From IMG/VR virus record IMGVR_UViG_3300025141_000016, positions 124,001-188,000 of that record: a stretch of 64,000 nucleotides of DNA; one strand, given 5' to 3'. Of the stretch, positions 1-40,100 are shown piece by piece. Both the position numbers and the translations under genes were made by a program. Below the pieces are notes generated by a model that saw nothing but the letters and a program-made list of their open reading frames with translations, was not told the DNA's origin and did no database searches. Numbering within the stretch: the first letter of the stretch is position 1; each line of letters opens with the position of its first letter.

Positions 1-474
1 AAGCCCCTGTTCGGGGGAGACATTCGCCACGGCGACGTGGCTCTGGTCCTCGATGCGGGTGGGATCAAAGGTCAACTGGTCAAGGTGGAGTACACCGAGC
101 GTTGGGCCGAAGCCAACCCCGAGCAGACTTCCTACATCGCAGGCGAGGGGTGGCGAGAGCAGTTCACTTACCCAGAGGACTGCGTTGACGAGGAAGGCTG
201 GGAAGACGACGAGTGCATGGAACGGGCGTACCACGAGGCCGAGGTTGACTCTTTCCTTTGGAAATCCGACGAAGCTGAATGGCTCACGAAGCGGGAGGGC
301 GCTCCTCTCTCTGTAGGCGGGGCAATCACGGGGCTTCTCGTCCCCGATGAGCGCAGCAAGGGACACGCGGAATCACTCATGGGGGGTCTTGGGCTGGACT
401 TGCCGGTATTCATAGGGAGAGGAGCGTCGGCTGTGCGTGTTGCAAAGCGGTTTCTTCTGGGAGATGCCGCATGA
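1..474 (+). CDS. 5'-truncated hypothetical protein ending in the basic RGASAVRVAKRF motif
   Basis: Frame 1 is open from base 1 (KPLFGGDIRHGDVALVLD...); acidic core; the C-terminal motif matches the linker motif of neighbouring proteins. Confidence 0.75.
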   Translation, partial: KPLFGGDIRHGDVALVLDAGGIKGQLVKVEYTERWAEANPEQTSYIAGEGWREQFTYPEDCVDEEGWEDDECMERAYHEAEVDSFLWKSDEAEWLTKREGAPLSVGGAITGLLVPDERSKGHAESLMGGLGLDLPVFIGRGASAVRVAKRFLLGDAA

Positions 475-767
475 CTGCTACTGAAATCCTGAACCAACTC
501 CAGCAACACAACCCCGAGGCGCTGCTCTTGGAGCCCCGCGAGGTCTACGACAAGGCTCTGGTTGGGGTCACGAACACCCCTGACGACCATTGGCCGCGCA
601 CTAACGGCATCTGGGTAGCGGTGTATGACGAGGAACTGTGCCTGGAAGCCATCATGGAATGGCATGAGTGTGGTTACAGCGATGCCGCTGACTGGTTCGG
701 CCACAACACTTCCGGGGCATGGGCTGGGGAGGGCACTCCGACGTTCCGCTCACACGGCGAGGAATGA
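471..767 (+). CDS. Conserved phage hypothetical protein
   Basis: ATGA overlap with upstream stop; pattern ALVGV..VAVYD..C..AI..DAADWF.HN..GAW.GE.TP.F resembles a common small phage protein family (recognised from memory). Confidence 0.8.
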   Translation: MTATEILNQLQQHNPEALLLEPREVYDKALVGVTNTPDDHWPRTNGIWVAVYDEELCLEAIMEWHECGYSDAADWFGHNTSGAWAGEGTPTFRSHGEE

Positions 768-789
768 CCCAGAGCGCCCCCCTCGGGGC

Positions 790-804
790 GGTACTTCCTT
801 TATG
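790..804 (+). promoter_or_regulatory. Putative late-promoter motif GGTA-N6-TTATG
   Basis: Same spacing as copies at 10083, 15682, 18893 and 49744(-); each lies 22-35 nt upstream of a start codon. Confidence 0.5.
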
Positions 805-829
805 GGAAGGTAGGGTGGCAGGAGTGTGA

Positions 830-3800
830 ATGGAATCCCTACCCAAAATGCAGGCCGTTGTAGATCGGCTTCATATAGACGGGGTGTTGTGGCCTCACAT
901 GGATGTGTATTTCGACTACCAGCGGGTTCCCGCAAAGTTGAAGGATCATGCCGCATGGTGGGTGTATAGAGGCTCGCACAAAGATATGCTGTTCAAGGCT
1001 TGGCGTGCGCTCCCCCCAGAACAGAAGGAAGCCCTCGACATCGCCAACGAAGCCGCCCATCAAGGATCTACGCTGACCCTCTACCGAACCCCCACCGGAA
1101 CAGAGCACACCGATCATGCAGGGGCCTCCTTCACGACGGACAAGAGCTTGTGGGGCGACGAAGGCTACGCGGTGCGTGTGCCCGTGGGTGATGTGTTGAT
1201 CTCCTACAAGACTCCGGGCTTCGAGGACATCTTCAACAACCAACGATACGGGCACGAGAAGGAGGTCATCCTCAAACCGACCGCATCAGCCGCTCGGGTC
1301 GCTTCCCGGTACATTCGGGCAGGTGGGTCGTTTCCTGCTATGCAATCCGCTGTGGACCGGCTCTACAATGAGGGTGTCATCGACTACCCCATCGAGGTCC
1401 GGTACTTCGGCCCCAGTGGTAGTGGGAACGTCGAGATTCAACTCCTCAAAGACGGTCGCCCCGGTGACTACGCTGGTCACTTCTTCACGTCCAAGCACGC
1501 GGATGGGTGGGAATCTCCGAGCACCTTGCGGGGGATCTCCGATCCATGCTTGAAGGCATACCGTAAGGTGCGGCGCAAGAACAAAGGCGCAGGTCTATGG
1601 TCAGTCCAATGGGCTTTCCTGAAGGACAAGGCCCTGTGGGGTCACGGGCTTGGCAAGATGGCCTACGAACAGATCCTCAAAGACGCGGGCAAGTTTGGGG
1701 CTGTCGTGTTCCCTGCATGGTGCGCCACAGGAGGGTCCACTACTCCGATGGCACAGCGAGTGTGGGACTCCGTAGGGAAACGCCATAGCACCGAAGGGGT
1801 GGTTGTCATCCCCAAGAACCTCCGGGTCGCTTCGACGGTAGGCGTTGCGACTCGGTACGCGAACCGCACACTCACCCAACAGACCCAACGGCTGGAGAGT
1901 GCCGTCACAGCCTTCATGGACGCTCTGCGGGAAACGGGGCGAGCCATCGGAGGGTGGAGGCGCAAGCCAATGCCCCCAGGCACCCCGGCTGCTATGCGGG
2001 CTGCTGCATCCACCCTCTATGACCTGCTCGACATTCAGTTTGAGCGCGAGTACGACGCTGCCCGGTTGAAGAAGTACCTCCGCAGGGCCAAGAACCTGCG
2101 GAAACTGGTGGGGCAGTACCGTCAGGTGGCCGACGCAGAGGAGTTGGAGGAGGTCTACCGAGCACAGTCATCCAAGACCAAGGATGCCTGGGAGAAGATC
2201 AGGGACTACACCAGCGAGGTCATTTCTCTCCTCACCACTTTCGACTCGGAGCCAGCCGGAGGATTCCGCGTCGGGGGGATGAGGGTCGCCTTGATCCAGC
2301 AAGGGGGTGCGTCATGGAACGACGAGATGATCGAGAAGTTGAAGGCGGTCCTCGCAAAGACCGATGCTTTCCTCAAAGGACGAGGGCTCGGAGTGCTGAC
2401 CAAGGGTCTTCTCGTCTTTGCGTACCCCACCTCTGGGATCCCTGGCATCGGTTCGGCAAACGCCTTCTACAACCGGGCAAAAGATATTGCTGCCATCGCC
2501 GCAGGGTCCAACTGGTTCCGCAAATCTTCCGTGAACCGGATGGTTCAAACCATGGTTCACGAGTTGGGTCATCGAGCCTACTACCAGATCATCGGGAACA
2601 CAGGTCGCGGGGCCTGGGAAGGGTTCTTTGAAGCCATGCAGAGCCCTCCCGATGTGGATGGGATGATCCGACGGTGGAAGGCATGGGTGCAGCAAGCCAA
2701 TGACCCCAAGGAACAGCGCCGACGCAGCCATTTCGGCATGTGGTTCCCCGAGTTGTCAGGCCAGGACGCGGAAGCGGCTCAATGGTTGCTCATGGCAGTC
2801 CGATCACTGGGGATCCAGAAAGGGGAGAAGTTCGACTCGTACCGTGGGAACCCTACCCCCACCTCGGTAGCCGCTTTGGACGTGCTGGAAGACCGGAAGG
2901 ATGAGGTCAAGGTTTTCGCGGAGCCCGTTACCGCCTACTCCGCGACCAACCCATCGGAGTTGTTCGCGGAAGTGTTCGCCCACTACATCGCCCACGGTCC
3001 TCGCACCCTTTCACCACGAGTACGGGCCGAGTTCAAGCGGAGCATCCCCCAGATGAAGGTGGGCCGAGCCTCCATGACTCACCGCTTCGCCTATCAAGGG
3101 GGACACACGCCCCCCGACGACGGCGCACAGGCACACGATCTTGGTGCGGGCACCCATTTCCCAGCGGACATTCTGACCCACCCCGAGTGGTACACCGGAT
3201 TTCGGGGTCATTTACGGTCGTTCTGGGACTCCATTCTCAAAGCGCAAGGCAAGCCGGGGTCACGCATCTCGGTTTACCGAGCACTTCCCGGTCAGCACAC
3301 CACGTTTTCTTCGGGAGATTGGGTCACCCCCTCCCTCCGCTACGCACAGGATCACGCTGCGGGTGAGGAGGGATGGCACATCATCAAGGCCACTGTTCCA
3401 GCCCGAACCCTTCGATTTGCTGGAGATGACCTCGTGGAGTGGGGCTACTGGGGTCCGACCGTCGAAGGGAAGGTCGTTGGTCACGCACGAGCAGCGAACA
3501 GGAGTATCCCAATGAAGGTAGCCCTCACACGACGTATGGCAGCACGAGTCGTAGCCCGACACGTCCGAGACAAGATTGACTGGCACGGTCAGGTGGCAGA
3601 CCTGCGGTCACAGGTCGAGAACCTGCGGGTGCTCCGACAGGGCTACCGCAAGCAGATCGGAGACATTCGACGGGCGGTTGGTGCTCTGGATAAGTCACTG
3701 GCGGGTTCCTCGATGCACCGGGACATTCGGCAGGGGTTGTCCAGAGCGGTTCAGTCGCTCGATGGCCATGATCCCCGCACCACGTCGTTCCTGGGTCAAC

Positions 3801-3847
3801 TTGACTACCTCACAAGTCAGTACGACCAGATCGGGATGGGGCTGTGA
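830..3847 (+). CDS. Polyvalent multidomain protein (ART-like / GNAT / zincin metallopeptidase / ART-like / coiled coil), putative virion-packaged effector
   Basis: TLYR..SFTT..HEKEV (R-S-E ART pattern); LWGHGLGKMAYE (GNAT motif A); MVHELGHRAY plus ELFAEVFAHY (HExxH zincin); VYRALP..GDWVT..YAQDH (ART-like); domains separated by RVAxR[YF]-type linkers; RBS GCAGGAG. Confidence 0.8.
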   Translation: MESLPKMQAVVDRLHIDGVLWPHMDVYFDYQRVPAKLKDHAAWWVYRGSHKDMLFKAWRALPPEQKEALDIANEAAHQGSTLTLYRTPTGTEHTDHAGASFTTDKSLWGDEGYAVRVPVGDVLISYKTPGFEDIFNNQRYGHEKEVILKPTASAARVASRYIRAGGSFPAMQSAVDRLYNEGVIDYPIEVRYFGPSGSGNVEIQLLKDGRPGDYAGHFFTSKHADGWESPSTLRGISDPCLKAYRKVRRKNKGAGLWSVQWAFLKDKALWGHGLGKMAYEQILKDAGKFGAVVFPAWCATGGSTTPMAQRVWDSVGKRHSTEGVVVIPKNLRVASTVGVATRYANRTLTQQTQRLESAVTAFMDALRETGRAIGGWRRKPMPPGTPAAMRAAASTLYDLLDIQFEREYDAARLKKYLRRAKNLRKLVGQYRQVADAEELEEVYRAQSSKTKDAWEKIRDYTSEVISLLTTFDSEPAGGFRVGGMRVALIQQGGASWNDEMIEKLKAVLAKTDAFLKGRGLGVLTKGLLVFAYPTSGIPGIGSANAFYNRAKDIAAIAAGSNWFRKSSVNRMVQTMVHELGHRAYYQIIGNTGRGAWEGFFEAMQSPPDVDGMIRRWKAWVQQANDPKEQRRRSHFGMWFPELSGQDAEAAQWLLMAVRSLGIQKGEKFDSYRGNPTPTSVAALDVLEDRKDEVKVFAEPVTAYSATNPSELFAEVFAHYIAHGPRTLSPRVRAEFKRSIPQMKVGRASMTHRFAYQGGHTPPDDGAQAHDLGAGTHFPADILTHPEWYTGFRGHLRSFWDSILKAQGKPGSRISVYRALPGQHTTFSSGDWVTPSLRYAQDHAAGEEGWHIIKATVPARTLRFAGDDLVEWGYWGPTVEGKVVGHARAANRSIPMKVALTRRMAARVVARHVRDKIDWHGQVADLRSQVENLRVLRQGYRKQIGDIRRAVGALDKSLAGSSMHRDIRQGLSRAVQSLDGHDPRTTSFLGQLDYLTSQYDQIGMGL

Positions 3848-4326
3848 TGAGCGGAGCCTCTGCCCGTCGAGTCGCGTCCCGCGCTGTCGGGAAACGTCTC
3901 CAGCAGTTTTTCCACTCCCCCGAGATTCGTGCTCTTGCACCACCCGCAACCCGGAGTGGAGGTTCCCCCTGGATGCTGGGTGGGTGTCTGATCGCCGCAG
4001 AGGCCATCCAGAACATCTATGGGGGGAAACTCATTGGCTTGGATGCAGATGGTGGGGAGAAGCCGGGTGATGATGTAGTCCATGTCGTTGTCACTCACGG
4101 GGGCGGCTACCTTGATGCCCTCGGCTTCCATCGGAGCCTTGACGACATTCAAACCATCTTGGATAACAAATACCATTTGGATCAGCCGGTCTACCCGGTG
4201 CCCGGACGCTACGCGCTGAAAAGTGGAATCAAGCAAGACAGAGGGCTCTCTGACACCCTCGCGGACCTTTTCACCACGCCCAAGACAGCCCGAATGACGA
4301 AACAGATCGGGAAGGTGTTGCGGTGA
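3847..4326 (+). CDS. Putative papain-like (Cys-His-Asp) fold protein with N-terminal RRVASR motif
   Basis: GGCLIAAEA, HVVVTHGG and YLDALG give a C/H/D triad in order; TGATG overlap (alternative GTG start at 3844). Confidence 0.6.
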   Translation: MSGASARRVASRAVGKRLQQFFHSPEIRALAPPATRSGGSPWMLGGCLIAAEAIQNIYGGKLIGLDADGGEKPGDDVVHVVVTHGGGYLDALGFHRSLDDIQTILDNKYHLDQPVYPVPGRYALKSGIKQDRGLSDTLADLFTTPKTARMTKQIGKVLR

Positions 4327-6137
4327 TCCTCTACAGGGCCACGACCGACTCTATTGCCCGCCAAGGTGCTCATTTCACCGAGCACCTTGAGGATGCCGTC
4401 GCGTACACGGACAACCCCGGATTCGGGGGTTCCACCGTGTATTCGTATCGGGTGAGCCCCCGGAACGCTCTGGAAGTTGGCGATCGGGAAGACCTCGCAG
4501 AAGCCTACCTCGACCTGCTCGATGACGACCAGAAGTGGGAGTGGGACTACAAACTGGGTGAACCCCCGACCGCCCACCTTCTCGCACGCTTCTGGCAGGG
4601 TAGCGGCCTCATCTTTGTGTTCCATGTCCTTGAACACTTGGAGCGGGGTGTTCCAGATGTGGAGGAAGTCTTGGCAGACAAGTACGATTGGATCTCGTAC
4701 CCCGATGACTTCCCTGCGGGGTCTACGACATGGAAGTACCTTGGCACGGGGTCGTTGAAGCCGGACAGTAAAGACCCTCTCCACCGCAGAGCCTCTGCCT
4801 CCCGTGTTGCTCTCCGGTTCGCCACGGCCCGTGGCAAGACCTTGTGGCACATCACAAAGGATCGGAACTTCCGGCCTGACCCCGACTTCCGACCTGTCTC
4901 GGGAGGGGGTTGGGACACAGCCCGAAAGCCCATGATCTACGCGACGACCAGCCCACTCTACTGGCACAGAGTGAGTGGTGGGGGTGAGGGTCCGTGGACG
5001 AAGGGTCGTGCATGGGCAGCGGAACTGGAACTGTTGCCCGGTCACCCTCCGGTCAAGCGGGAAAACCCCTTGCGTCCACAGACGATCCTCGACCCGGAGT
5101 TCGTTCGGGTCAAGCGCGTGATCCCGGTGGAGCACGCCATCGCAGAGGAGACGGGGTATCTGGGCAACGAGTACGTCGGTGGCGATTACATCTACGGAAA
5201 GACCGCTGCCCCCTTCGTGGACGAAGGCATGGTCGGAGAGGATTGGGGGTCGTCCGCCTCCGGTCTGCTCGTCACGGACGGCGACCGGGTGCTCCTGCTC
5301 AAACGGTCGCCCTACGTTCAAGACCCCGGCTTGTGGGGAATCCCCGGTGGAGCCGTCCCGGTGGACTACGACACCGGGAAGCGGAAGGACGCCAAGAAGT
5401 CTGCACTGGACGAGGCCCGTGAGGAGATGCGGGGCATCCCGTCTGGCTCTGTGGTCGGCAAGCATGTGTTCCGCAAGCCTTCTGGTTTCTCCTTCACGAC
5501 CTTCGTGTGGGAGACGGACCCGGACTCTCTGGACCAGTTCACGCCCCGGCTCAACTGGGAGCACACCGACTGGAAGGTCGAGGACATTGGAGACGTGGGG
5601 TCAGGGACTCACCCAGGAGTGGTGTGGGTGTTGAAGAAGATGGGTCCGGGCCGAGTGGCGAGACGTGCCGGTCGCGAGCATTACCCCGGTCAGGTGGACA
5701 AGGGGAAACTCAACGCCTTCATGTCAGACTACAAGGGCATGACCTACCCGCCATTCATGCAGGACATGAGGATCTGGACAGACGACCCAAAAGACCCAGA
5801 CGCTCCTTTCGTGATGACAGAACTCAAACCCTTCGATGGCTACATCTCATTCCATGCCATCTACTCCCCGGACAAGCAGGGAGCGGGGCTCGCGAGCGGC
5901 GTTATCAAGAAACTGACGGCGATAGCAGACAAGCATGGTGTGTCCATGACGCTCGATGCCAAGCCCTTCAGCACCATCGACAACCAACTGAAAAAGTCTG
6001 ACCTCATTGGTTGGTACAAGAGGCACGGCTGGATTCGGCGGCCTGACTACGGCGACTCGTCGTCTATGATTCGCTACCCTGGCGGAAGTCGAACGCCACC
6101 CGCTCGTACAGCTTCCTTCACCCATGGGAGGGCGTAA
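4323..6137 (+). CDS. Polyvalent protein: two ART-like domains, NUDIX hydrolase, GNAT
   Basis: ILYRA..HFT..AVAY; LWHIT..IYATT; LLLKRS..LWGIPGG..SALDEAREEMRG (NUDIX box variant); QGAGLASGVIKKL..LIGWYKRHGW (GNAT); GTGA overlap. Confidence 0.8.
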   Translation: MILYRATTDSIARQGAHFTEHLEDAVAYTDNPGFGGSTVYSYRVSPRNALEVGDREDLAEAYLDLLDDDQKWEWDYKLGEPPTAHLLARFWQGSGLIFVFHVLEHLERGVPDVEEVLADKYDWISYPDDFPAGSTTWKYLGTGSLKPDSKDPLHRRASASRVALRFATARGKTLWHITKDRNFRPDPDFRPVSGGGWDTARKPMIYATTSPLYWHRVSGGGEGPWTKGRAWAAELELLPGHPPVKRENPLRPQTILDPEFVRVKRVIPVEHAIAEETGYLGNEYVGGDYIYGKTAAPFVDEGMVGEDWGSSASGLLVTDGDRVLLLKRSPYVQDPGLWGIPGGAVPVDYDTGKRKDAKKSALDEAREEMRGIPSGSVVGKHVFRKPSGFSFTTFVWETDPDSLDQFTPRLNWEHTDWKVEDIGDVGSGTHPGVVWVLKKMGPGRVARRAGREHYPGQVDKGKLNAFMSDYKGMTYPPFMQDMRIWTDDPKDPDAPFVMTELKPFDGYISFHAIYSPDKQGAGLASGVIKKLTAIADKHGVSMTLDAKPFSTIDNQLKKSDLIGWYKRHGWIRRPDYGDSSSMIRYPGGSRTPPARTASFTHGRA

Positions 6138-6139
6138 CC

Positions 6140-6448
6140 ATGGCACGATGCGGACGATGCGGGTTGTGGAACAAGTATCCAGACGACCACCACGAGCAGA
6201 AGCACGCGGGCGTGTGCATGTGGTATCAGATCCGACTCCAAGAGACGGACGTTTGGGAACCCCGTGAGTGCTCGGATTTCTTTGAACGCATCCCTGGCCT
6301 CCATGCGTTTGACCACTTCAAGTACAAGATTCAGCGGGACAACATCGGAGATGCCTACCGCACAGCGCGGTTCTCCAAACGTCTCGCCATCCTGGGGGCA
6401 ATCATCTCGGTGGTGAGCATCCTCCTTTCCTTGTGGGGTGCTTTATGA
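6140..6448 (+). CDS. Cys-rich small protein with C-terminal transmembrane helix
   Basis: CxxC at the N terminus plus further Cys; hydrophobic tail LAILGAIISVVSILLSLWGAL. Confidence 0.7.
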   Translation: MARCGRCGLWNKYPDDHHEQKHAGVCMWYQIRLQETDVWEPRECSDFFERIPGLHAFDHFKYKIQRDNIGDAYRTARFSKRLAILGAIISVVSILLSLWGAL

Positions 6449-7821: not shown

Positions 7822-8835
7822 ATGGCATCAAAGAAAGCAGCCCCATTGGGTGTCGGTTTAGACATCGGCACCATGAATCTTGTCTCGGCTCGTCGCACAG
7901 CGGACGGCTCGGTGGAGACGACCCGGATGCGGGATGCGTTCCTCGATCTGGATGCCAGCGCCAAGAAGATGTTGAAGCTCTCTGGGGTCAACTTCATCGA
8001 CCATGGGGAGGACGGGATCATCGTCGTTGGAGATGCAGCCATGGAGATGGCCAACGTGTTCGGACGCGAGGCCCGACGACCTTTGTCGCAGGGTTTGATC
8101 TCGGCAGGGGAGATGGATGCCCTTGATGTGTTGGGCGTTCTGGTCAAGAACGTCATCGGTGAGCCCGCCAAGGCAGATGAAGTCTGCTACTTCTCTGTCC
8201 CCGCAGCCCCCGTGGATGAGAGCCGTGATGTGGTGTACCACCGAGGCGTGTTTGAACGCATCGTGACCGAGTGCGGATACGAGCCCTACGCCTCCAACGA
8301 AGCGATGGCGATCATCTACGCCGAAACAGCCGCCGACGGGTTCTCGGGCCTTGGCATCTCTTTCGGGTCAGGGATGTGCAACCTCGCCCTCGCTGTATCT
8401 GGGGTCGAGGGGATGGTGTTCAGCGTGGCTCGGGGTGGTGACTGGATTGATGCTGGAGCCGCGAAGGCCACTGGGTCAACCCAAAGCCGGATGTGCGCCA
8501 TCAAAGAACGGGGGGTGGACCTCATGGACCCGAAGTCTCGGGAAGAGGAAGCCCTCATTCTCTACTACAAGAGTCTCATCGAGTACGCCCTGGACCAGAC
8601 GACCCGTGAGTTCATCAAGATCAAGGACCGCTTCTCTCTCCCCCGACCAATCCCCATCGTGGTGTCGGGTGGAACAAGCCTCGCAGGCAACTTCCTGCCG
8701 TTCTTTGAGCAGGTCTTTGAGAAGAAGCGTCGGAAGTTCCCCATCGAGATCAGCGAGATTCGGCACGCGAGCGATCCCATGAACGCCGTCGCCCGAGGTC
8801 TGCTCATCCAGGCTATGCAAGAGTATGAGGACTGA
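7822..8835 (+). CDS. Actin-like ATPase (MreB/MamK/FtsA-fold, ASKHA superfamily)
   Basis: Phosphate-1 GLDIGTMNL, connect NEAMAI, phosphate-2-like ISFGSGMCN, adenosine VSGGTS; RBS AGGAG. Confidence 0.85.
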   Translation: MASKKAAPLGVGLDIGTMNLVSARRTADGSVETTRMRDAFLDLDASAKKMLKLSGVNFIDHGEDGIIVVGDAAMEMANVFGREARRPLSQGLISAGEMDALDVLGVLVKNVIGEPAKADEVCYFSVPAAPVDESRDVVYHRGVFERIVTECGYEPYASNEAMAIIYAETAADGFSGLGISFGSGMCNLALAVSGVEGMVFSVARGGDWIDAGAAKATGSTQSRMCAIKERGVDLMDPKSREEEALILYYKSLIEYALDQTTREFIKIKDRFSLPRPIPIVVSGGTSLAGNFLPFFEQVFEKKRRKFPIEISEIRHASDPMNAVARGLLIQAMQEYED

Positions 8836-9412
8836 ACGGTAGAATCCTACGCTTCCACAGGTACAGGCGAAGACGGGTCTTTCCCTTCCAGCCCATACGA
8901 CAAGTGAGGTTGTAGAGCCGTTGGGTATCTCGGGCATCTTTGAGGGCGGTGTGTGCCCCTTCCTTTCCCCATCCGAGGAAGTCGCGGATCGGGTCTAACC
9001 CCAACCGAGGAAGCCCCAAGGGGGTCAGATGCTCATGGGCGAGAGTCACGGTATCTACCTTGTGGTAGGGAACACGCTTCTGGAATCCAGCCCGTTTCAG
9101 GTTGGAGTTGATCATCTCCTCGTCAAAGGAGACGTTGTGACCGCACAGCGCACTTCCTTTGAGGAAGGCCAAGAGGTCAACCCCCACTTCCTTCATGGTG
9201 GGGGCATCCTCCCATCGTTCGGGGGCAGCGGCGTACCCATTGATTTCCAGTGCTTTGGGATGGGCTGTGTGGATGTGCTCCGGGCGGATGAGAGTGTGGA
9301 AGACACGCTCGTTCCCCCCTTCCACCCGGATAGCAGCGACTTCGATGACCTCGGCTACGGAAGAATCGAGCCCGGTGGTTTCAGTGTCTATGAACGTAAT
9401 GGCCTTTATCAA
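8813..9412 (-). CDS. DEDDh 3'-5' exonuclease (DnaQ/PolIII-epsilon-like)
   Basis: ExoI FIDTETTGLD, ExoII GHNVSFDEEM, ExoIII HTALKDA; start re-chosen as TTG at 9412 behind AGGAGG. Confidence 0.9.
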   Translation of the reverse strand: MIKAITFIDTETTGLDSSVAEVIEVAAIRVEGGNERVFHTLIRPEHIHTAHPKALEINGYAAAPERWEDAPTMKEVGVDLLAFLKGSALCGHNVSFDEEMINSNLKRAGFQKRVPYHKVDTVTLAHEHLTPLGLPRLGLDPIRDFLGWGKEGAHTALKDARDTQRLYNLTCRMGWKGKTRLRLYLWKRRILPFSPHTLA

Positions 9413-9541
9413 GAACCCTCCTGTGTTCCTTATTACACGAAAAGCCTCGCCCACGGACCCCCCCTTGCAAGGCTCCCTGTGGGGGTTGGGGGGTTGGAGT
9501 TGGCGCACAGCGGGTAAAGAGGGAGAGGGAGAGGAGTATCC

Positions 9542-10087
9542 TTGACTCGGAAAATGAAACCCATCGAGATCCCAGTACCAGGGACGATCAGGGAGGCTGT
9601 GTTCTCCGTGGCCGTTCCTATTGGCGATGGCACGTTCACGACCGTAGGCACCCTGATTGAAGAAGCGCAGCGTGCGTTGGGCAGAGCGAACGAAGTCCTC
9701 TCCACCAACGCCCTGGTTGCCCTTGCAGCCCAGGACATGGCCCGCCAGTATCGGCGCAGAGGACACTCTTCCATCTCCATCCGTGCTGACGGTGAAGTGG
9801 TGTTTCGGGTTCAGTACACGGACCCCCAGGATCCCCTTCCCCCCGAGCCTCCGAGTGCTCCTGGGGGTGCGGGCCTCCCTCTCCTCTCGGCCTTGCGTGA
9901 GAGGGCGGGCGAGTTGGGGGTAGACATTTCCGACCTGGGTCGCCAGAAGCGCAAGATCATGCGGAGGTTGGCGGAAGCCTCTCTCCCCCCAGACTCCCCA
10001 AAGACAATGGAAGAACCCCCCCCACGACTACGGGATGAGGTCACGACAAGCACTCCCCTCCACACGACGAAGTTGCCCGGTCGGTAG
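9542..10087 (+). CDS. Hypothetical protein
   Basis: TTG start with strong GAGGAG RBS; 181 aa. Confidence 0.65.
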   Translation: MTRKMKPIEIPVPGTIREAVFSVAVPIGDGTFTTVGTLIEEAQRALGRANEVLSTNALVALAAQDMARQYRRRGHSSISIRADGEVVFRVQYTDPQDPLPPEPPSAPGGAGLPLLSALRERAGELGVDISDLGRQKRKIMRRLAEASLPPDSPKTMEEPPPRLRDEVTTSTPLHTTKLPGR

Positions 10088-31168: not shown

Positions 31169-34100
31169 GTGGGCTTCAATCTCGATGGCTATGTCCTACG
31201 TCCGGCTCGCGTGGCTTCAGGGAACTCCCCTGACACGAACGAGGCGACTACGGGCGTGGATCGCAGTCAAATGGACGGGGCGGAAATGGCGACCCTCGGC
31301 TACACCGTGGCACCCACGGGTGGTCGTTTTACGACAGCCGTAGAACCCTACGGCGATATGTACCGGGCAGCCGTCCTCCAGAAGCCCGAGAGCCGCGAAG
31401 CAGAGGAGACGTACTGTGTGTTCGCGGCCACCACTGGTTCGTTGAGCACAGTGGAAAGCGAGTTCCTGGCGCAGTCTGCATCGAGTGATGCGGTTACCGT
31501 CGTCCCTGGAACCCTCGCCGTAGAGGGTGGCGTTTGGAACGATGGGACCGACACCTTCCTCGTCTTGGACCCTGGGGGGCGAGACATTAGTTCCGTGTCC
31601 TCCCTGGTCATCATCAAGGGACCGATTGTTCCGGGGGCTCCTCCCACCTACGTCACGATCACAGATGGGGGGAGTCCGGGCTTTTTGAGCCAAGACCCCT
31701 CGATTGGGAAGGTCGTCCTTGACTCCACCGCCTTGGACCCCGCCTACCTCAATGGCGGATTCTCCAAGGAACGTGGGGACCAAATCCTCCTCGTCACCTA
31801 CATCCTGGGAGGGCCAACCTTTTGGTGGACGCGGAATGACCAAGACGTGACCCGTTTCGGGTGGGACGGCAAGAACCAACGATGGAGCCCTCTCCAGGGC
31901 AGCCTCCCCCGTGACCTGGGGGCCGTCAATGGTGAGGATGAGTTCAAGTTGACCCCACCCCTCACCCGCTTCGCTGTGGGGGACATGCTCCCTTATGACG
32001 ACACCACTACGGATTCTTATGCGTTGGTTCGGTCTGGGCTCTACCCCGACTCCATCTCGACCCCACTGACCATCCTCGTGGTGACAGACGAGGAAGCCGC
32101 AAGCGGCACATGGAGCGGGTCATGGATAGACCCCGCGACCGGCACCGCTGCGGATGCTGTGGTGGGGGTCTACAGCGGGGATCTTCTCCTGAACCCCACT
32201 TACATCGAGGCCAATGCTGGACGCACCCTCTGGTACAACCCGGAAACCTTCGTCGTTGACGCGGATGGGGATCTGGGGGAAGTGGCCGACTTCTACCCTC
32301 TCGCGTTGGTCCCCACTTCCATCGGCTTTCCAGCCCTGTCTCCAGTTCCCGGTCCAACTGACCGTCCCTTCCTGCGGATCGGGTCGCGCCGTTACTTGAC
32401 CCCATACGCCGTGGACACGGATGCTGATCTCCCCACTCCTGCGGACTTCCCGGCGGGGAACTTCTACTGGTCCCGTATGACAGGCCGCATCGTGTTGTCC
32501 AAACACGACATTGACCGTTGCACGCCTGGGGCATCCACCACGAACCCCACCCCTGACTTTTCTGACTACGACATTTTCTACCTGGGGGCTCGGCTCTACT
32601 ACGACGGGGTGTCTCTCAACACGCAGCCCCTCCCGGTAAAGGCACCCACCCCGGTCTTCGATGAAGCGGGGCTCCCGTTGGACGGCGACCCCGAGACGGT
32701 CCCTATCTTTGGGAAACTCTACATCCCGCGTGCGGTTCCCCTTCCCCCTCCTGGGATCAGTGGGGTGCTGTGGGTGCCGGACGGCTCGGGGGACACACCT
32801 TCCATTGATGAAAAAACCATCCCTCTTACGCGCCCCAACGGGTGCGGAATGATGCGTGAGATCGAGGGTATCGGGGACACGTTCTTCTTCGGTGAATCCT
32901 ATGCCTACGAGAAAACCGATGTAGAGGAGTACGACGAAGACCTCCCCGTTCTGAAGTTCAAGGTGCCCAAGAACACAGTCGCCGTATCCCGGCTGCAAGA
33001 CCCGGATATGACAGGCTCCCCGTTGGAAGAATACTCCCGCCTCCAGATGCGCCGGAGGCTCGTCAAGGGGGAAGCCCTCTACTTCCTACAGGCCCAGATT
33101 ACTCCCTCGGTCTATGCCGACGAGGCCCGCATCTTCTCCCGCTTCGGGGAGCCCTTCACCCTCCTGGGAACGGAAACGCTCACCTTCAATGTGGATGACT
33201 TCGCGGGGGGCTACAAGTGGGTGGCCACCACATTGGGTGCGGGAGAGTTCTCTGCTGCCGAGGTAGCGGCTGACATACAGGCCACCTCCGGTGTCCCCGC
33301 AGGGTCCGTCGGGTCGCTACGAGGTCGTATCTTTATCCGTGACGCTGACCTCAAAATAGGGAAGGTGGAGATTGGATGGGATCAGTCAGACGCGACCGAC
33401 CTGTCTGGACCTGCTGCCCTCGGTTTCTTGCCCGGATGGCGCGTATCCCTCCCCCTTCCCGCAGCCCCAGCACCTAACTTCTGTTGGCTCCCAGACAACG
33501 GGGCCGCGATGGGAGTGTTCCGCAGCCCGGTCAACATGGACCGGAGAGATGACACCCCGGACATTCGTGCCAAGAGCCAGTTCGATGACCTGCTCCTCAC
33601 GGACAACATCACAGGGATGCCTTTCTTCAGCATCAACCAGCCGCCGTTGGAGGACATGCCAGGGTACGACGAGGGAGTTCACTTCCGTATGGCTATCGGG
33701 CTCCTCACGGTGGACTTGAAGAACTACCACACCACTCTCGGGGTTGGGATCAAGTACGACTGGGTGTTTGACCGGCTGGTCTGGACCGAGGAAGGAGAAA
33801 CCTCTGCAACCCAGGTGGCGTTCCCCACCTCAACCCTTCAGTTGGACCACCCTGCCATCCTTCCCGAGACAGTCTCGGCCCTCGCCATGGACGACACCGC
33901 TTTCGGCCTTCGGGTGAAGGGACCGCTGGATGACTCCTATGCCACCAAGATCCGGGGTGAGGATTTCCTCATGCCTGGAGGGGGTCAACCGGGTCAGGCA
34001 CTCTTGGTGTCTGTCGAAGGTGGGGTCAAGGCAAGCGGGGGGTGCGGCCAGTTCACCGCAGGCACCACCACGTTTGAAGACCCCAATGTCCCAGACCAAG

Positions 34101-37100
34101 ACGATCTGGCTGCCGAGGTGTTGGTTGGCTATCTCCTCCACGTCCTCACCGGGGAAGCCGAAGGGGTCTACCAGATCACAAAGGTCACAAGCGGACCCCC
34201 GACCGTACTCAACGTGTTTCCGGCTTTCCCGAGCAGCCAGACGACTGCCCAATGGCGCGTATACGAAGCCAAGCCTCGGGACGAGATCGACAACACTCTC
34301 GTAGCTGATGTGCAACAGCAGGTGATGAACCACCTGCCCTCCGAGCCTTTCAAGATCCGGCTGCTCACCTCCACCGGCACCGTGGGGGGATCCCTTGTGG
34401 CCGAGGTGGCCGATGCCATCTCCTCCAACCGCGTGATCTCGTTGCGTTTCGGGTTGGGGGAGGGTGGAAACGCCAATGAGGCCACCCCTGCCTATCTGGT
34501 GCGCGGGGTAAAGATGGGCACCGTGGTCGCCACCGGCCTGGAAATCCCCGACACTTCAGACCTTCACTTTCAAACCTCCCTTGCGGGTGGGACGGCGTAC
34601 TTCAGTTTCCGGGTGGGCGCTGCGGAGTTCACGAGCGGGGTCAACCTCGTCATGGTGGCCGTAGCAGGGACACCGGCTGCGGGAACCGTAGAGATCGTCG
34701 CGGGCAGCGGAGAAGTCGTCTTTGCCGACGATGTGGTTTCGGACCTCTCTGGGAGCACCGTCTTCTACGACCAACAGTTCCTCAACCCAGACGATCTCAC
34801 CGCAGGTGAGTGTGAGATCAACGCCTCCGACGGAAGCATCAACATCTCGACTTCCGATGCAGGCACCTATGCCGGTGAGACGGCGTACTTCGTGGAGGAG
34901 ATGGTCACGGTCAACGATCTCGACGTGAAGACCTCTCCCGTCAGCGGGAGCATCCTCTTCAAGAAGCCCTTGCGGGCCATGCAGATCGTTGAAACCAACT
35001 ACTTCCAGGCTGACACGAACGGGGACAAGGCCACCGACACCGACGGCAACTACATCGAGGTCACCGAGTTCCTTCCCCTCATCGTGAAGCTGGAGGTGGC
35101 GACTCGGATTGATGACTACACGTTCTCCTTCAACCCGACCGGGAGAACGTACTCCGAGGTAGTCGATCCCTTCATGTGGGTCGGCGTGGAACTCCAGAAC
35201 TTCGCAGGCATAGAGACAGCCTTCATCGAGGTAGACGAAGACCTCGGCATCTACCTCATCAAGTTGACGAGTGCCGTGGAATCCACGGACGAGGTGAAGA
35301 TCAACTACGGCGTGCTGGAAGCCTTTGGAGGCGAGTCAGCGTACACCGTCTCCACACCTCCGGTGTACCGGAAGCCGTTTTTTCTGTTGGAGGGTCAAAC
35401 GTCCTTCGACTTGGAGACTGACCGGTCAGCGGATTTCCCGGTGGGGCATCTCCTCATGCTGGGACCGCAGCCCCTCTACATCAAGACGGTGGCCTACGAC
35501 ATCACCACTGACCTCACGACAGTCACCATCACCCCGGATCCCTTGGGGGAACTCGGGAGCCGTGCGGTGGGACGGGATTCAGGGCTTACCGTCTCCGATT
35601 TCCCGGTGTCTGTGACCCTCTCTCCAACAGACACAGAGGGCTTCATGCCCACGCTGGACACCTCTACTGCAACAGGGACTCCCTTGCTTGCCGTGGATCG
35701 GGGTCAGTTGGAGGTGGTCTTCTACGGGGATGTGCGGCAGTACACCAAGCCCAATCACCTGCTGGAGATTGAGGAGTGCCCCTACATCATCATCAACTCC
35801 TCCATGTCTGATGATGGTCGCAACACCATCGTTGAGATCGCCACCCCAGCCTACAAAGCCCACGACAACAGCAACACGGTGCGGATCAGTATGCGCCCCG
35901 TTTACCAGCCCAGCCCCATGGAGTTTGCTGGGATTGCCCCTTTCGTGACCAGCGAGGAATACAACCTCTTCCTCATGGGGGCGACAGAGAGCGGGGTCGG
36001 CGTACCGGGCAAGGAGTTGATCGAGGGAACCCACTACACGACGGACGCAGCTACGGGGGAGATCATCTTCCAGACCCCCACACAGCCCCCGTTGAACCCC
36101 GGAGAATGGCTCCACTTCCGCTACACACGGCAGGTAGTGGTGAACCCCTTGGTGAAGGATGACGCGCTCCTATACCCGCTCTACAAGGGCAGCTACCTCT
36201 ATATGACGGTCCCCTCGGTCCCCAACAGGCTCCTCGGGAGCGTGTTGCGGGCCAAGTACACCTACCGGAACCCCGATTCTTTCTACTTCTCCACCCTTCC
36301 TATGAGGAACTACCTGGGAGACGTGGCCAAGGTATCCGCCGCCAAGGGCGGGTCAGCACCCTCGGGAGGCCCTGTCCTGGCGTTCCCCGGCGAGTCCAAC
36401 ATGGGAAGCCAGGGAGCCATGGGGTTGCGGGGGGAAGCACAGGACTACCGTGACCAAGACCGGGGAGGACGTGTCTACGTCGAGTTCTTCAACGGGGTCA
36501 TTGTGGCCTTTGAGCAAGTGCTTGAAGCCATGGATGGTCGCATCATCGGGGACAGAGACGGGAAGTTCCTTTTCTTCCTCGGGCGTGACAAGCGGTATCC
36601 ACCTCCCGGCTACGAGGACTCCATCAGCGGGGAGTTGAACCCTCGCCTCATCTGGCGCGAGGTCATCGAGAACTGGTCCCCCTCCGACTACACCGACAAC
36701 GATGGGTGGTACATGGAGGCGGATCCGGTATTTGACCCCACGACAGCGGAGATCCCCGACACGGGGGAACGCCCTGGCGCTCCCGATGGAATAACCCCGG
36801 ACCCCCACTCCCTCTCTTTCTACACGGGTCGGCAGCGCCATCGGGTGAAGAACGACATGGACGACCGCCTGTTGATCGGGTTCGGTCGGCCTCGTGGGCT
36901 CGCTTTCCTGTTCCCAAAGTTCGACGTGCCTGGGAAGTTCAAGGACATGTGGCAGGACCACGAGTACAGCCGCCTGTTCCCAGAGAAGACCACCCACTTC
37001 ACGCGGTTGTTCCCCGGCCTGGAAGCGGTCATGGGGGCAACGGGCTTCACAGATCCGGGCTACTACTCCTCTGGTCGTAAGATCGAGGTGCCTGGACCGG

Positions 37101-40100
37101 AGCCCGGAGAAACCACCGAGCAAAAGGTCAAGACACGCAAGACCGTCAATGGGGTCATCTGCAACCCAGCCCTGGGCGACATTCAGAACATCTCGGATGT
37201 GACTGCCGAGGACCGGCATCCCCGCGCTCGCGTGTGGGCTTACTATCCGTTGGGTAGTGCGGAGTTGGACGCGGCTTTGGGAACCACCACTGCAAGCCCT
37301 CCATCTGCGACATTCGTAGCCACGCCGGTTCCGTTGAGCGAGTTCCCGATCAACCCGGACACGGGGTTCCCTGACATTACGCAGTTGCTTTCGCAAGGTG
37401 GGGGCATTTCTGACTTGGAGTCAGGAGATGCAGCCCTGTCCACGCCAGCCTTTGTGGGGTCAACCACCGCTGGGGAGGCACCCCGAATCAACTTCGGAAA
37501 GCCGGACGGCACCATCTATTCCCTGACAGCGGACTCGGACCTCAACGGGGTCTATATCGGAGAGGTCCAGGCCGGTTGTGTTTTGGTGCTCGTTGATGTG
37601 ACGGGGGCACCGTTGGCTGGGTCCAGCGTCTTCGTCAATGAAACTATCCCCCTGGAAGACGTGATTTCCGCCGATGGTGGGTACGGAGACACGGTGTTCT
37701 GTGGTCCTACCAGCGGAACCCTGGACCCCACTTCCGTCCCGACACAGCCCACCCTGGATGAAACTGCTGAAGCTACCCAGGGGCTTCCCGACTACCGCAT
37801 CCAGTTCGACCTCAAAGTGGGCCGTCGGTCAGGCACCTTCATCGACGCATCGCTTCCCACCGCTGACGATGCGTTCCCGTTCCCTCTGCAAAAGTGGTTC
37901 GGCCAGAACCCTCCCTCTCCGCTGTCCTGCGTCGAGGGAGTGGTCGAGTTCGTCAACACGTCAACGCAGCCGCTCCAACTCCCGTGCCTGTTGGGCGAGG
38001 ACAAGGACGACAGCGGTGACTACCAGATCCCCTACATGCGGACCACGAACACCGAACTCGTGGTGCTCGGGGAAGTAGCTGCCTCACTGGTCCTGTTGTT
38101 CATCGACACGTCAGCAGCCCTGCCCCTCCCGGCAGGTGTTCCTGCCATCGAGCAGCAAGACCTTTCACTGGCGGTCTACCCCAACGAGATCGTCGTCAAC
38201 AACGGCACCATCGTCCAGGCCACCGACTATCCTGGCTATGCCCTCAACCCTGCCACTCTCTATGTGGGGGCTGCCGCCGCTGACGGTGACCTTCGCCCTG
38301 TGGAGACAGCGGGGGCCTACACCGCGAACTCGGGCATCGGAGACGTGCGGCGTTTCGACCTCATCTTGTCGCAAGCTGACCAAGCCCTCGTAGGGGCAGG
38401 AAGCATCCCGGCTGGAATGACCGGCATCTTGACCGTGGGCGACGTGGAGCAAACCGCTCCTTCAACTGACCCCAACCGTCCTTCGACGCTGGAAACCCCA
38501 CGGTTCGTGACCCCAACTGCCACAGGGATGGAACATAAGTACACCATCCGTGGGTTCGCAGCGAATGTGGCTGACGACACAGGGGACAACGGGTTCCACA
38601 TCACCGAAGTCTCGGGCGGTGGACAGCGGGATACCGTTTTCCACTTCGGGACGGTTCCCCTCATCCGACTCACAGAACTCGCAGCCCTCATCCCCGGCAC
38701 GCCTCCCGCCGCAGGTGTGGGAAACGCCCTGGTGATCCGCATCTATGACGCGGACCCCTCACTGGCTCCTGCGACGGACCCCTTCATCGGAGCCCTTGTC
38801 ATCCCCTGGGACGATCCGGGCGAGGTCATGTACGCCTGGAATGAGGCCGCAGCAGCGACAACAGCCATCACCACGGACCCTGCCGGGGTCGGGGTTGTAT
38901 TCACCGCCGACACTGTTTCTATCCAGTGTGTAGTGGCACAGCCGTCAATCATGGTTGCCTTGGGGCTCGTGGTTTCCACCCACTACGACTTCACGTTGGA
39001 CTTCGACACCTACTTCGACCCTGATACAGTGGCCTTCACGTCCGGGGTACTTGTCGGAGGTGCTGGTCTGGGCTCCTTGACCTGTGAGGTCGGGCGAGAT
39101 CGTCTGACCTTCAAAGAGGCGCTGGCCTTCAACCTCGCCAAGCCTCGGGGATACAGCCCCGCCAACGACCCAGGGAATACCAACCACGGACACGAACTCG
39201 GTGTCCAGATTGCCGTGCATGAGGTCACCTGCCAGGGTGTCCAGGGCTTCACGGTGAACTCCCCCGCTGCGATCAACGGAGCCCCGGCTCCGGGGGCGGC
39301 TGGGTTCGGAACCCACTACCTCACCTTGTTGGAGCGCATGGGTCCGAGTCCCGATGCAAGTGTCAGCGCCTTGGTGGAGTACACGGGCACCTGGGACGGC
39401 TCTGACGGCTCCCTCCGACTCATGGCATGGGAAGGGTACGAGAACACCCCCCTCGCCGCCGACGTGTCCACCATCAAGTTCGCCGGAGTCCCTTCATCCA
39501 ACGCCAATGAAACCGCCGAGATTGCGGCTGGGTTTGGAGTCATGGCAGACAAGGGCTTCATCGACACCACCATGGGGCTGGACCTCGATGGCAACCGCGA
39601 CTACATCTACGGGGCGGCTTTGTTCTTCCCCCTCGTACCGGACGTGGAGGCGGGAGACATTGTGGTGGTGGATGCCGGAACCACATCATCCGAAGCCGTC
39701 AAAGCTGGGACGTACCTTGTTCGTCATGCCGTGTCCTATGATGCAGGGGACGCATACGCGACCCCTGCTGCGAGCATCCCCTTCGTTCAGGCCCCGCTCC
39801 GTCCCGCTCGTCAATGGGACGATGCGACCGCTCCGGTCCCCAAGGCTGAAGCAAAGTTGGCGGGCACCCCTTCCGGGTCCGGGGGCTTTGACTGTGTGAA
39901 CGTGGACTTCCCCACCATCTTGGAAGTGGACTCCGTAACCAATGAGGTGACCCTACAGGGCGTAGTCCCCGTGCCTGGAACCCCGAACGGCCACGGATGG
40001 GCAGATCCGGCAACGGTGCCCAACAACCGCCATGTTCACTTGATTTTGGGGGATAAATACGCGGAATACGACAGTGCAACCTCCGCATGGCACATCAAGC

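Follow-up and report, generated by a model that had tools for sequence, protein, structure and literature searches.

Polyvalent proteins of phages are a computationally predicted class, and how they are delivered and how their parts are separated is still open. That question is raised by two large genes, called here A and C, which lie near the start of a 64,000-nucleotide stretch of DNA (hereafter the window), bases 124001-188000 of the 297,104-bp linear virus record IMGVR_UViG_3300025141_000016 (G000; CheckV completeness estimate 67%). Do these genes encode proteins of that class, which modules can be recognized in them, and how would the products be deployed? Gene A (P0001; 830-3847, 1005 amino acids, aa), gene B (P0003; 3844-4326, 160 aa) and gene C (P0002; 4323-6137, 604 aa) are co-directional on the plus strand, as are all of their modules, motifs and tags given below; they fill positions 830-6137, share a 4-nt start/stop overlap at each junction and are translationally coupled. 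A preliminary description of this DNA, made from the letters alone, had placed an arsenal of modifying domains in two proteins, and both open reading frames exist exactly as it gave them (830-3847 and 4323-6137), whereas the gene between them went unlisted. Gene B is an orphan, for which family and relative searches, including a search for related loci, found nothing.

Our results place the products of genes A and C among the polyvalent proteins as Iyer et al. defined them in 2017, where they represent a new variant of the class, with Arg-triad ADP-ribosyltransferase (ART) folds, an ART-NUDIX fusion and a short peptide tag that recurs between modules. Gene A reads ART-like (A1), tag, GNAT-like (A2), tag, helical region plus zincin (A3/A4), ART fold (A5), tag and helical tail (A6), and gene C reads ART fold (C1), tag, probable ART fold (C2), NUDIX (C3), tag and GNAT-like (C4). 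The interpretation that we favour, and that we regard as reasonably probable, is that the locus is an island of a huge marine phage in which genes A and C encode beads-on-a-string polyvalent effectors, composed of independently mobile modules and carrying tags, which act early and are likely packaged.

Module composition of genes A and C

Relatives were gathered by word search and by one exhaustive phmmer search with P0001, which returned 1878 cluster representatives at E <= 1e-3. Judged by the extents of homologues, gene A divides into A1 (aa ~16-160), A2 (163-347), A3/A4 (345-750), A5 (750-885) and A6 (900-1005), and gene C into C1 (aa 1-165), C2 (166-295), C3 (292-442) and C4 (445-604). The modules are sharply defined, because each has its own set of relatives with unrelated neighbours. 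Each polypeptide carries at least two unrelated catalytic-type domains, with at least four enzyme-like modules in gene A and four in gene C, and whole-protein Pfam scans returned only NUDIX (19.7 bits) and a few weak zincin matches. AlphaFold2 (AF2) models were made for A5 and for residues 1-300 of P0002 (A1, A2, C4, A6 and gene B lie outside them), and VIA-align was searched against 48,161 representative chains. The motifs behind the domain calls of the preliminary description (TLYR, GASFT, HEKEV, WGHGLGKMAY, HELGH, ELFAE, VYRALP and GDWVT) were all located where it had put them, and they are more than chance occurrences because their residues are invariant in each module's family. The helical region of the zincin unit, the C-terminal helical module A6, the inter-module tags and the hypervariable island are additions to that description.

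A5 (3080-3487, aa 751-886) is an ART fold as modelled, with an R-T/S-E triad consisting of R817 in VYRALP (3272-3289), T833/S835 in GDWVTPS (GDWVT at 3314-3328) and E870 in LVEWGY. Both R817 (YRA) and E870 (LxEWGY) are invariant in 65 diverse relatives, and H, Y, A, P, G, W and V positions (GDWV[TS], YA..H) are near-invariant in the same set. The AF2 model has a predicted local distance difference test score (pLDDT) of 89.7. The Foldseek comparison that had been proposed as a check found nothing in the PDB at E <= 1e-3 with either the A5 model or that of P0002:1-300, but the weaker list for A5 was full of ARTs (Vis, Arr, VIP2, TreTu/TreX, cholera toxin, Tpt1). The folds were assigned from what such weaker lists contain and from VIA-align, whose lists for A5 and C1 were dominated by ARTs as well. 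For A5, ~45 of the top 50 VIA-align rows were ART-fold proteins with Z up to 6.7, headed by BC2332 (Z 6.7), KptA (6.6), TreX (5.7), CNFy domain 4 (5.6) and TreTu (5.6), and including Arr, diphtheria toxin, Scabin, pertussis toxin, LT, AcrIF11, RES, ParT and PARPs. The structure of BC2332 had itself already suggested a diphtheria-toxin-like ART (PMC3024214). The VIA alignment range places A5 model positions 70..145 on LT 4..133, with R817 falling on LT Arg7. Neither a different fold nor a loss of catalytic residues, which the preliminary description had named as grounds for giving up its proposal, was found for A5, whose structural list is almost wholly one of ART folds and whose Arg and Glu do not vary.

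This family is very widespread, as most of the best 150 of 518 cluster representatives at E <= 1e-10 match A5. It belongs to no Pfam family, a Pfam scan of the 65 members was inconsistent, and a profile search against PDB sequences found no relative. The name it has carried so far is that of PHROG 2579, 'ParB C-terminal domain' (E 4e-30 over P0001 aa 750-882), which is represented in Mycobacterium cluster E phages such as Kostya and in Gordonia phage Skog; A5 corresponds to the last 130 positions of that profile, with ~37% identity to the mycobacteriophage proteins. The name assigns no function; A5 has the ART fold in its model, its Arg and Glu are invariant, and no ParB accompanies it here. 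Three compact ART-fold families, of which A5 is one, lack a Pfam model, and the invariant Arg and Glu make an NAD+-dependent activity of A5 directly testable.

The first module of gene C, C1 (4323-4778, aa 1-152), is likewise an ART fold according to its model, here with a helical insert, and presents R5 (ILYRAT), T19 (AHFTE) and D122 (YDW). In the P0002:1-300 model, blocks over aa 1-150 have pLDDT 69-96, mostly ~90, and the elements follow in the order beta1 (ILYR), beta2 (HFT), helix, beta3, beta4, five-helix insert and beta5, the last preceded by an acidic residue that is D122 here and D or E in distant relatives. VIA-align returned nearly only ART folds, namely cyanophage A4 pre-ejectosome chain B (Z 7.0 over 130 residues), ParT (6.8), diphtheria toxin (6.7), Xre-RES (6.6), MbcT (6.4) and AcrIF11 (5.4), and the Foldseek search against the PDB placed 9k3a_B (E 2e-3) and AcrIF11 (E 3.5e-3) just outside the threshold. 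A BFVD search with P0002:1-300 gave 7 matches at E <= 1e-3. Proteins labelled 'ART-PolyVal-like' (in one case at E 4e-4) and 'large polyvalent protein associated domain' appear in its list, and so, more weakly (E 7e-3), does an N4-like vRNAP. The best structural match of C1, residues ~1422-1639 of PDB 9k3a chain B, belongs to a packaged ejection protein of the cyanophage A4 pre-ejectosome and also matches A5; the terms 'ADP-ribosyl' and 'transferase' do not occur in the accessible part of the paper describing that structure.

For A1 (875-1285, aa 16-152), a candidate R-S-ExE ADP-ribosyltransferase, the call comes from motifs, which are WWVYRG (956-973), TLYR (1076-1087), GASFT (1121-1135) and HEKEV (1253-1267). 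R86, G98, S100, Y140, H142, E143 and E145 are invariant across 7 relatives of 37-59% identity, standalone proteins of ~170-190 aa that keep TLYR, G.S and Y.HE.E.I.KP, and the set corresponds to the classical R-S-ExE pattern. A Pfam scan gave no match for A1, and ESM Atlas features offered weak leads to DUF4765 (0.88), Arr-ms (0.84) and PARP (0.84). Its TLYR-to-GASFT spacing is 14 residues, against a canonical ~40 from R to STS in Alt/VIP2/C3-type enzymes, while the upstream WWVYRG (R47) lies 53 residues from GASFT, and either Arg could be catalytic.

C2 (4830-5198, aa 170-292) is probably an ART fold of the H-Y-E type, Arr/RES-like in its modelled shape, with H176 (LWHIT), Y206 (IYATT) and E234 (AAELE). 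His176, Thr178 and Glu234 are invariant in 9 relatives, in which the Tyr position is Y, F or I. ESM Atlas features pointed to the Arr-ms, PARP and Tox-ART-HYD1 clusters at 0.91-0.92, the ten best all falling in one clan, and the Atlas shape comparison to RES (TM 0.53), Arr (0.51), DUF952 and DUF3990 (TM ~0.5). The module is less well modelled than C1 and had a single VIA row, BC2332, at Z 5.1. The four ART-like domains that had been proposed at the outset therefore differ in standing, with A5 and C1 as confident folds, C2 as a probable one from the Atlas comparison and A1 as a call from motifs. None of the four matches the Alt/VIP2/C3-type family PF03496 in the Pfam scan, and none matches ART-PolyVal (PF18760, cut-off 31.2 bits) at E up to 10. 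Small ART-fold enzymes (AcrIF11, ParT, RES/MbcT, Arr, Tpt1/KptA, TreTu/TreX and the diphtheria-toxin catalytic domain), all of them compact NAD+-using domains from conflict systems, are the closest structural counterparts of A5, C1 and C2; the modules described here differ from them in sequence (5-18% identity, Z <= 7) and in an unusually short beta1-beta2 connection of ~14 residues from Arg to the S/T strand.

The zincin claimed for gene A proved to be part of a larger unit. A3/A4 (1862-3079, aa 345-750) is one ~400-aa family unit consisting of an N-terminal helical region of ~230 aa and a gluzincin with HELGH (2558-2572) and ELFAE (2957-2971), and dozens of standalone ~410-aa proteins align end to end with aa ~345-750. 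The HExxH plus E..AE signature held in all 48 sequences of the family, in which H577, E578, G580, H581, E710, A713 and E714 are invariant. Pfam matches of the family went to zincins only and all fell below cut-off (Peptidase_Mx in 10 of 48, the anthrax lethal factor family ATLF in 5, Peptidase_Mx1 in 4, MPTase-PolyVal in 2), P0001 itself scoring 12.5 bits for MPTase-PolyVal where 27.5 are needed, and the family profile found only noise or weak motif matches among PDB sequences.

The NUDIX hydrolase of gene C is the module with a Pfam assignment. C3 (5211-5642, aa 297-440) has the box GGAVP...DEAREEMRG with an insertion of ~6 aa, to be compared with the canonical G-x5-E-x7-R-E-U-x-E-E-x-G-U. 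As the dissected segment P0002:295-455 it passes PF00293 with 22.5 bits (cut-off 21.1), and so its identification in the preliminary description is borne out; a relative in P0009 with 87% identity reaches 26.1 bits. Among solved structures, the family profile comes closest to MutT (5x1x; E 2.7e-5), followed by RenU (2e-3). E364, E367 and E368, the three Glu of REUxEE, are invariant across 12 relatives, and the position of the canonical Arg is occupied by D, I, H, Q or K across the C3 family.

A2 (1328-1816, aa 167-329) and C4 (5697-6116, aa 459-598) are probable GNATs from their sequence features. Both carry motif A (Q/R-x-x-G-x-G/A), as WGHGLGKMAY (1637-1666) in A2 and DKQGAGLA (5871-5894) in C4, and their family matches are consistent, since 3 of 9 members of the A2 family match Acetyltransf_1 (best E 0.024) and 4 of 4 members of the C4 family match Acetyltransf_7 (E 0.008-0.27). 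All of these remain below threshold, at 12-17 bits against cut-offs of 20.7-27, so that the claim of two GNATs stands in motif and tendency and falls short in score. Alignment by hhalign gave probabilities of 38% and 13%, the former for A2 against the bona fide GNAT of P0012 (E 3e-4), and no signal between the two families; profile searches of the PDB gave weak motif-A matches only. P0030, a relative of C4, has been named GNAT by JGI. The last module of gene A, A6 (3566-3844), is helical and has relatives in P0108, P0123, P0159 and P0009/P0010 (aa 417-510).

The comparison with polyvalent proteins, already made in the preliminary description, was strengthened by the homologues, in which modules of genes A and C are fused to ART-PolyVal (P0011 with 61.7 bits, P0010 and P0016 weaker), ParB_N (weak), a SprT-like zincin, SET and GGACT. 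The same genome has two Pfam ART-PolyVal matches in other genes. Like the proteins predicted by Iyer et al. (PMC5512222), those described here unite ART, GNAT and zincin modules in one phage polypeptide with mosaic architectures. That account gives the ART family of polyvalent proteins as the H-Y-D type ART-PolyVal and states that R-S-E ARTs of the Alt/VIP2 clade are absent from genuine polyvalent proteins, whereas three of the four ART folds at this locus have Arg-based triads. A NUDIX domain within the chain and a shared tag, which is not mentioned in the accessible part of the account, also set these proteins apart. NUDIX domains of phages are described as typically standalone, and the ARTs and NUDIX proteins of phages as often associated with the virion; the general idea that they are packaged and deployed against NAD-derived signals has been published as well (PMC9503650). 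C3 resembles the virion-associated NUDIX proteins of that survey (T4 NudE clade, NadM clade) in belonging to a large phage and plausibly acting early, and differs from them in being fused behind two ART folds and before a GNAT-like module, and in the ~6-residue insertion of its box.

Inter-module tag and hypervariable island

A peptide of ~10 residues, first seen as SAARVASRY, SARRVASRA and SASRVALRF, recurs between the modules with the consensus [PS]S.SRVA[SA]R[YFWH]. Tag 1 (SAARVASRY, 1286-1312) lies between A1 and A2, the degenerate and bipartite tag 2 (NLRVASTVGVATRY, 1817-1858) follows A2, and tag 3 (RRMAARVVARHV, 3530-3565) precedes A6. Gene B has SARRVASRA at 3859-3885. In gene C, tag 5 (SASRVALRF, 4794-4820) occupies the linker between C1 and C2, and the degenerate tag 6 (GPGRVARRA, 5643-5669) stands after C3, at the point where the related protein P0008 ends in GPGRVAASFAHGRL. 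Upstream of gene A, a weak site at 421-456 (+) scores 7.3 bits with a hidden Markov model (HMM) of the tag. In the model of P0002, tag 5 forms an isolated helix (159-171) within the linker, with pLDDT < 50 for aa 157-170.

The tag is not confined to this locus. Across the called proteins of the genome there are 36 instances of R[VIL]A[SAL][RT], where shuffles yield 3.1 +/- 1.7, and an HMM built from tag instances finds ~25 strong sites genome-wide. These sites follow start codons immediately (MIKPSASRVASRY, MTKPSPSRVASRY), separate the modules of large proteins or close a protein at its C-terminus, and single-module proteins that begin or end with the tag are numerous in the genome. The tagged proteins include Pfam ART-PolyVal, GNAT, Peptidase_C39_2 and a poly(A)-polymerase-type nucleotidyltransferase (PolyA_pol). 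Among retrieved metagenomic homologues, 20 of 174 have the strict tag, where 0.6 would be expected, and always at module ends; in standalone zincin proteins it is found at the N- or C-end. Conservation is at the level of the peptide, because every synonymous codon is in use and the tag persists in a low-GC relative as KIA[SK]LHKIA. A repeat at the DNA level, considered as the cause of the tag, was rejected on the same two grounds. The four tag peptide strings did not occur in the searched literature.

The locus is a hypervariable island, at which related phages carry another cassette or none. The related contig L007/L008 keeps the flanking genes (upstream 80%, 58% and 72% identity; downstream 64%, 60%, 43% and 88%) and has only two genes between them, again with tags. 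Their modules are an HxT-type ART-like domain, a GNAT-like domain, the same NUDIX (86% identity) and two 'YHAT' ART-like domains. In the 485-kb uncultured phage LR745208.1 (335500-343500), the flank homologues lie ~1.2 kb apart and no cassette stands between them. P0008, which of the full-length relatives stands nearest to gene A (88% identity), is without A1 and has NUDIX at its own C-terminus, and the borders of genes are for that reason as fluid as those of modules. Related proteins (L007 5083-7565, P0015 and P0020) also display HxT/YHAT-type ART-like, SET (37.9 bits) and GGACT/AIG2 gamma-glutamyl cyclotransferase modules fused to C1 or NUDIX modules.

Contigs from other marine metagenomes, compared over nt 600-6400, revealed the same process at the level of single modules. 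In one, position 874 is joined in frame to 1373 with 6 bases between, which removes A1 and its tag (nt 875-1372) and leaves an N-terminus of the P0008 type, MESLPKMQAVVDRLHAEGVIDYP. The peptide LPxMQxxVDRLxxxGV occurs twice in gene A, before A1 and before A2 (830-910 and 1325-1405), and about half of the aligned columns of the two DNA copies are identical; the A1-loss joint connects these two copies. The A1 region was covered in none of the four metagenome runs compared. A second joint, 5696 to 6117, takes out exactly the 140 codons of C4 in frame, with otherwise 1 mismatch in 1.9 kb, and a third, 3490 to 3539, takes out in frame 16 codons of the A5/A6 linker (3491-3538) just upstream of tag 3. 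In another contig the NUDIX module (90% identity) is joined to L007-type flanks at 5202, a module border. Natural variants that differ by exactly one module show that reassortment of the arsenal is ongoing in marine populations today. Because modules are lost singly and NUDIX occurs in other combinations, they are better understood as independent effectors than as an obligate ART-NUDIX pair.

Deployment and competing explanations

How would such proteins be used? In the interpretation that we favour, each module would act as an effector of its own during early infection. With NAD+ as substrate, the ARTs would modify host targets by ADP-ribosylation or would simply degrade the NAD+, and the GNATs would carry out acylation of targets. 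For the NUDIX enzyme the compound to be split would be of the NDP-X kind, for instance ADP-ribose, a signal derived from ADPR or an NAD cap, and the zincin would process its own chain or host proteins. Deployment would most likely be by packaging in the head and ejection with the DNA, as predicted for polyvalent proteins generally, and the original account adds possible zincin autoprocessing to that prediction (PMC5512222). The genomic context gives weak evidence in the same direction, as the gene directly upstream of the island resembles a 'minor tail protein' or 'structural protein' and C1 matches a packaged ejection protein, both of which hint at virion association. As with T4 Alt, to which there is no sequence relation, a phage ART would be expected at the very start of infection.

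Several findings weigh against this interpretation. All structural Z-scores are below 8, 'middling' by the tool's own grading; Pfam scans of whole and dissected proteins gave no ART or GNAT model at threshold; and the A1, A5 and C1 profiles showed no relation to one another in hhalign (probabilities < 2%). As no single Z exceeds 8, the ART inference for A5 is drawn from how uniform the list is and from the invariance of Arg and Glu, and as hhalign was silent, the 'YR-x12-14-G.hhT' core that A1, A5 and C1 seem to share is proposed from inspection and fold. C1 has Asp, not Glu, at the catalytic position, and the Nudix box of P0002 is non-canonical, with its insertion of ~6 residues, R->D and an R where relatives have G. 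By analogy with CNFy domain 4/DUF4765, which is among the matches, an ART-like fold need not be an active ART. In its exact form the tag is rare in relatives, the low-GC one included, and the tag HMM has 1 weak match each in the 485-kb and 316-kb relatives; because of this rarity the tag is perhaps lineage-specific and is not claimed for the whole clade. Prohead proteases of families S77 and S78 were not found in the record, which is incomplete and in which the S77 control gave no signal either, and most neighbouring genes are without annotation.

For the tag, a role in docking or packaging, a role as cleavage site, or the two together can be envisaged, and the main alternatives diverge on this point. 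In the favoured interpretation it would be a shared packaging or docking signal, a processing site, or both, and we tentatively suggest something more specific: a portable address label, through which modules tagged in any position would be brought to one shared place, be cut free there, or both; the inside of the capsid or the ejectosome is the most plausible such place. The internal proteins of T4 offer a parallel, in that a short peptide marks several unrelated proteins for a common fate; the T4 capsid-targeting signal is N-terminal only and is removed by gp21, whereas the putative signal described here is also internal and C-terminal. Alternatively, the genes might encode polyproteins, and the embedded zincin or the prohead protease would release single-domain enzymes by cleavage at RVA|S-like sites, a possibility to which we give a probability similar to that of the address label, that is, well under even. 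The tags do lie exactly at module borders, and in standalone zincin-family proteins the tag is terminal, at the N- or the C-end. A|S is the cleavage site of herpes-type assemblin proteases. Zincin autoproteolysis is moreover a published prediction for polyvalent proteins (PMC5512222). A cut at the tags of the extreme N-terminus (residues 2-14) or of the C-terminus would however free few residues, which fits a propeptide or docking element better; the usual prohead protease families were not found in the incomplete record; and when zincin, Zn and a tag segment of 40 residues were predicted as a complex, the result stayed at 0.07, short of the mark of 0.32, which is no verdict and speaks neither for nor against binding. 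A little less probable again, in our estimate, is that the proteins are never packaged and work in the cytoplasm as early host-takeover or anti-defence enzymes, with the tag docking them to a hub (ribosome, RNA polymerase or phage compartment) or regulating stability. The fold evidence is the same for this as for packaged effectors, a short amphipathic helix within a flexible linker is what docking motifs usually look like, the tag is N-terminal, internal or C-terminal, and phage NUDIX and Macro genes are found in early regions too (PMC9503650). It is countered by the virion-like upstream neighbour, by the packaged cyanophage A4 ejection protein as best match of C1, and by the prediction that the polyvalent class is delivered (PMC5512222).

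Two further explanations concern the enzymes themselves. The preliminary description had proposed that ART writers and a NUDIX eraser are delivered as a pair against Thoeris, SIR2 or DarTG, an idea that is a special case of a published concept (PMC9503650) and not a new inference. Fusions of ART and NUDIX, here and in P0013, P0014 and P0008, agree with it, as does the general concept. We nevertheless consider it unlikely, as the closest solved sequence relatives of the NUDIX are MutT and RenU, its partners in relatives differ (SET, zincin, or GNAT alone) and modules are gained and lost singly. Least credible, and in our view improbable, is that the ART-like domains are catalytically dead scaffolds in structural or internal virion components. 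Such a case is known in CNFy domain 4, for which neither NAD+ binding nor ART activity was detected (PMC7883292); CNFy domain 4 and DUF4765 are among the matches of A5 and A1, and the Z-scores are middling. Against it, the strict invariance of the putative catalytic Arg and Glu in 65 diverse A5 sequences and of R, S and ExE across the A1 family is an active-site pattern, and the neighbouring zincin and NUDIX keep their metal ligands.

Packaged, tagged effectors thus remain our preferred explanation, and the tag could then be the long-sought packaging or processing signal. If the address label is real, effector modules could be plugged in or dropped by in-frame recombination, as the population variants suggest, and the tag would be a counterpart of encapsulin cargo-loading peptides or of the T4 capsid-targeting sequence, but as a position-independent joint of polyvalent proteins. 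As a targeting signal it might also become a tool for cargo loading into phage particles.

Surroundings of the locus and other repeated features

GC content is ~60% along the whole window. Marine metagenomes are the sole listed holders of the stretch at more than small shares, and no RNA run is among the listed holders. The closest deposited genomes are those of uncultured huge phages of 485 and 595 kb; a megablast of the locus against isolated phages gave no match, and searches for related loci with the gene A protein (P0001) found none. A gene at 8813-9766 (-) resembles the exonuclease subunit of DNA polymerase (PHROG 192, E 5e-35) and is the only clearly annotatable neighbour. Further downstream, 31169-42625 (+) is an open frame of 3818 aa without PHROG match, and as the adjoining reading frames match baseplate and tape-measure proteins weakly, this may be a tail region.

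Other polyvalent proteins are encoded by the same phage. An 850-aa protein at 46287-48839 (+) contains a paralogous A5-type ART-fold domain (aa 624-708; PHROG 2579, E 7e-11) and is also tagged, near aa 491. Beyond the window, in record coordinates, lie those at 190585-195144 (1519 aa, three tags) and at 231505-235248 (1247 aa; Pfam ART-PolyVal, 46 bits). A second repeated peptide, DR..LIRLAST[LM]..GS.ERK.IL, is present in at least six otherwise different proteins of the record; the reading frames with DR..LIRLAST[LM] are, again in record coordinates, 121011-121739, 196643-197203, 197240-198244, 222015-223886 (-), 266923-268161 and 275013-275348.

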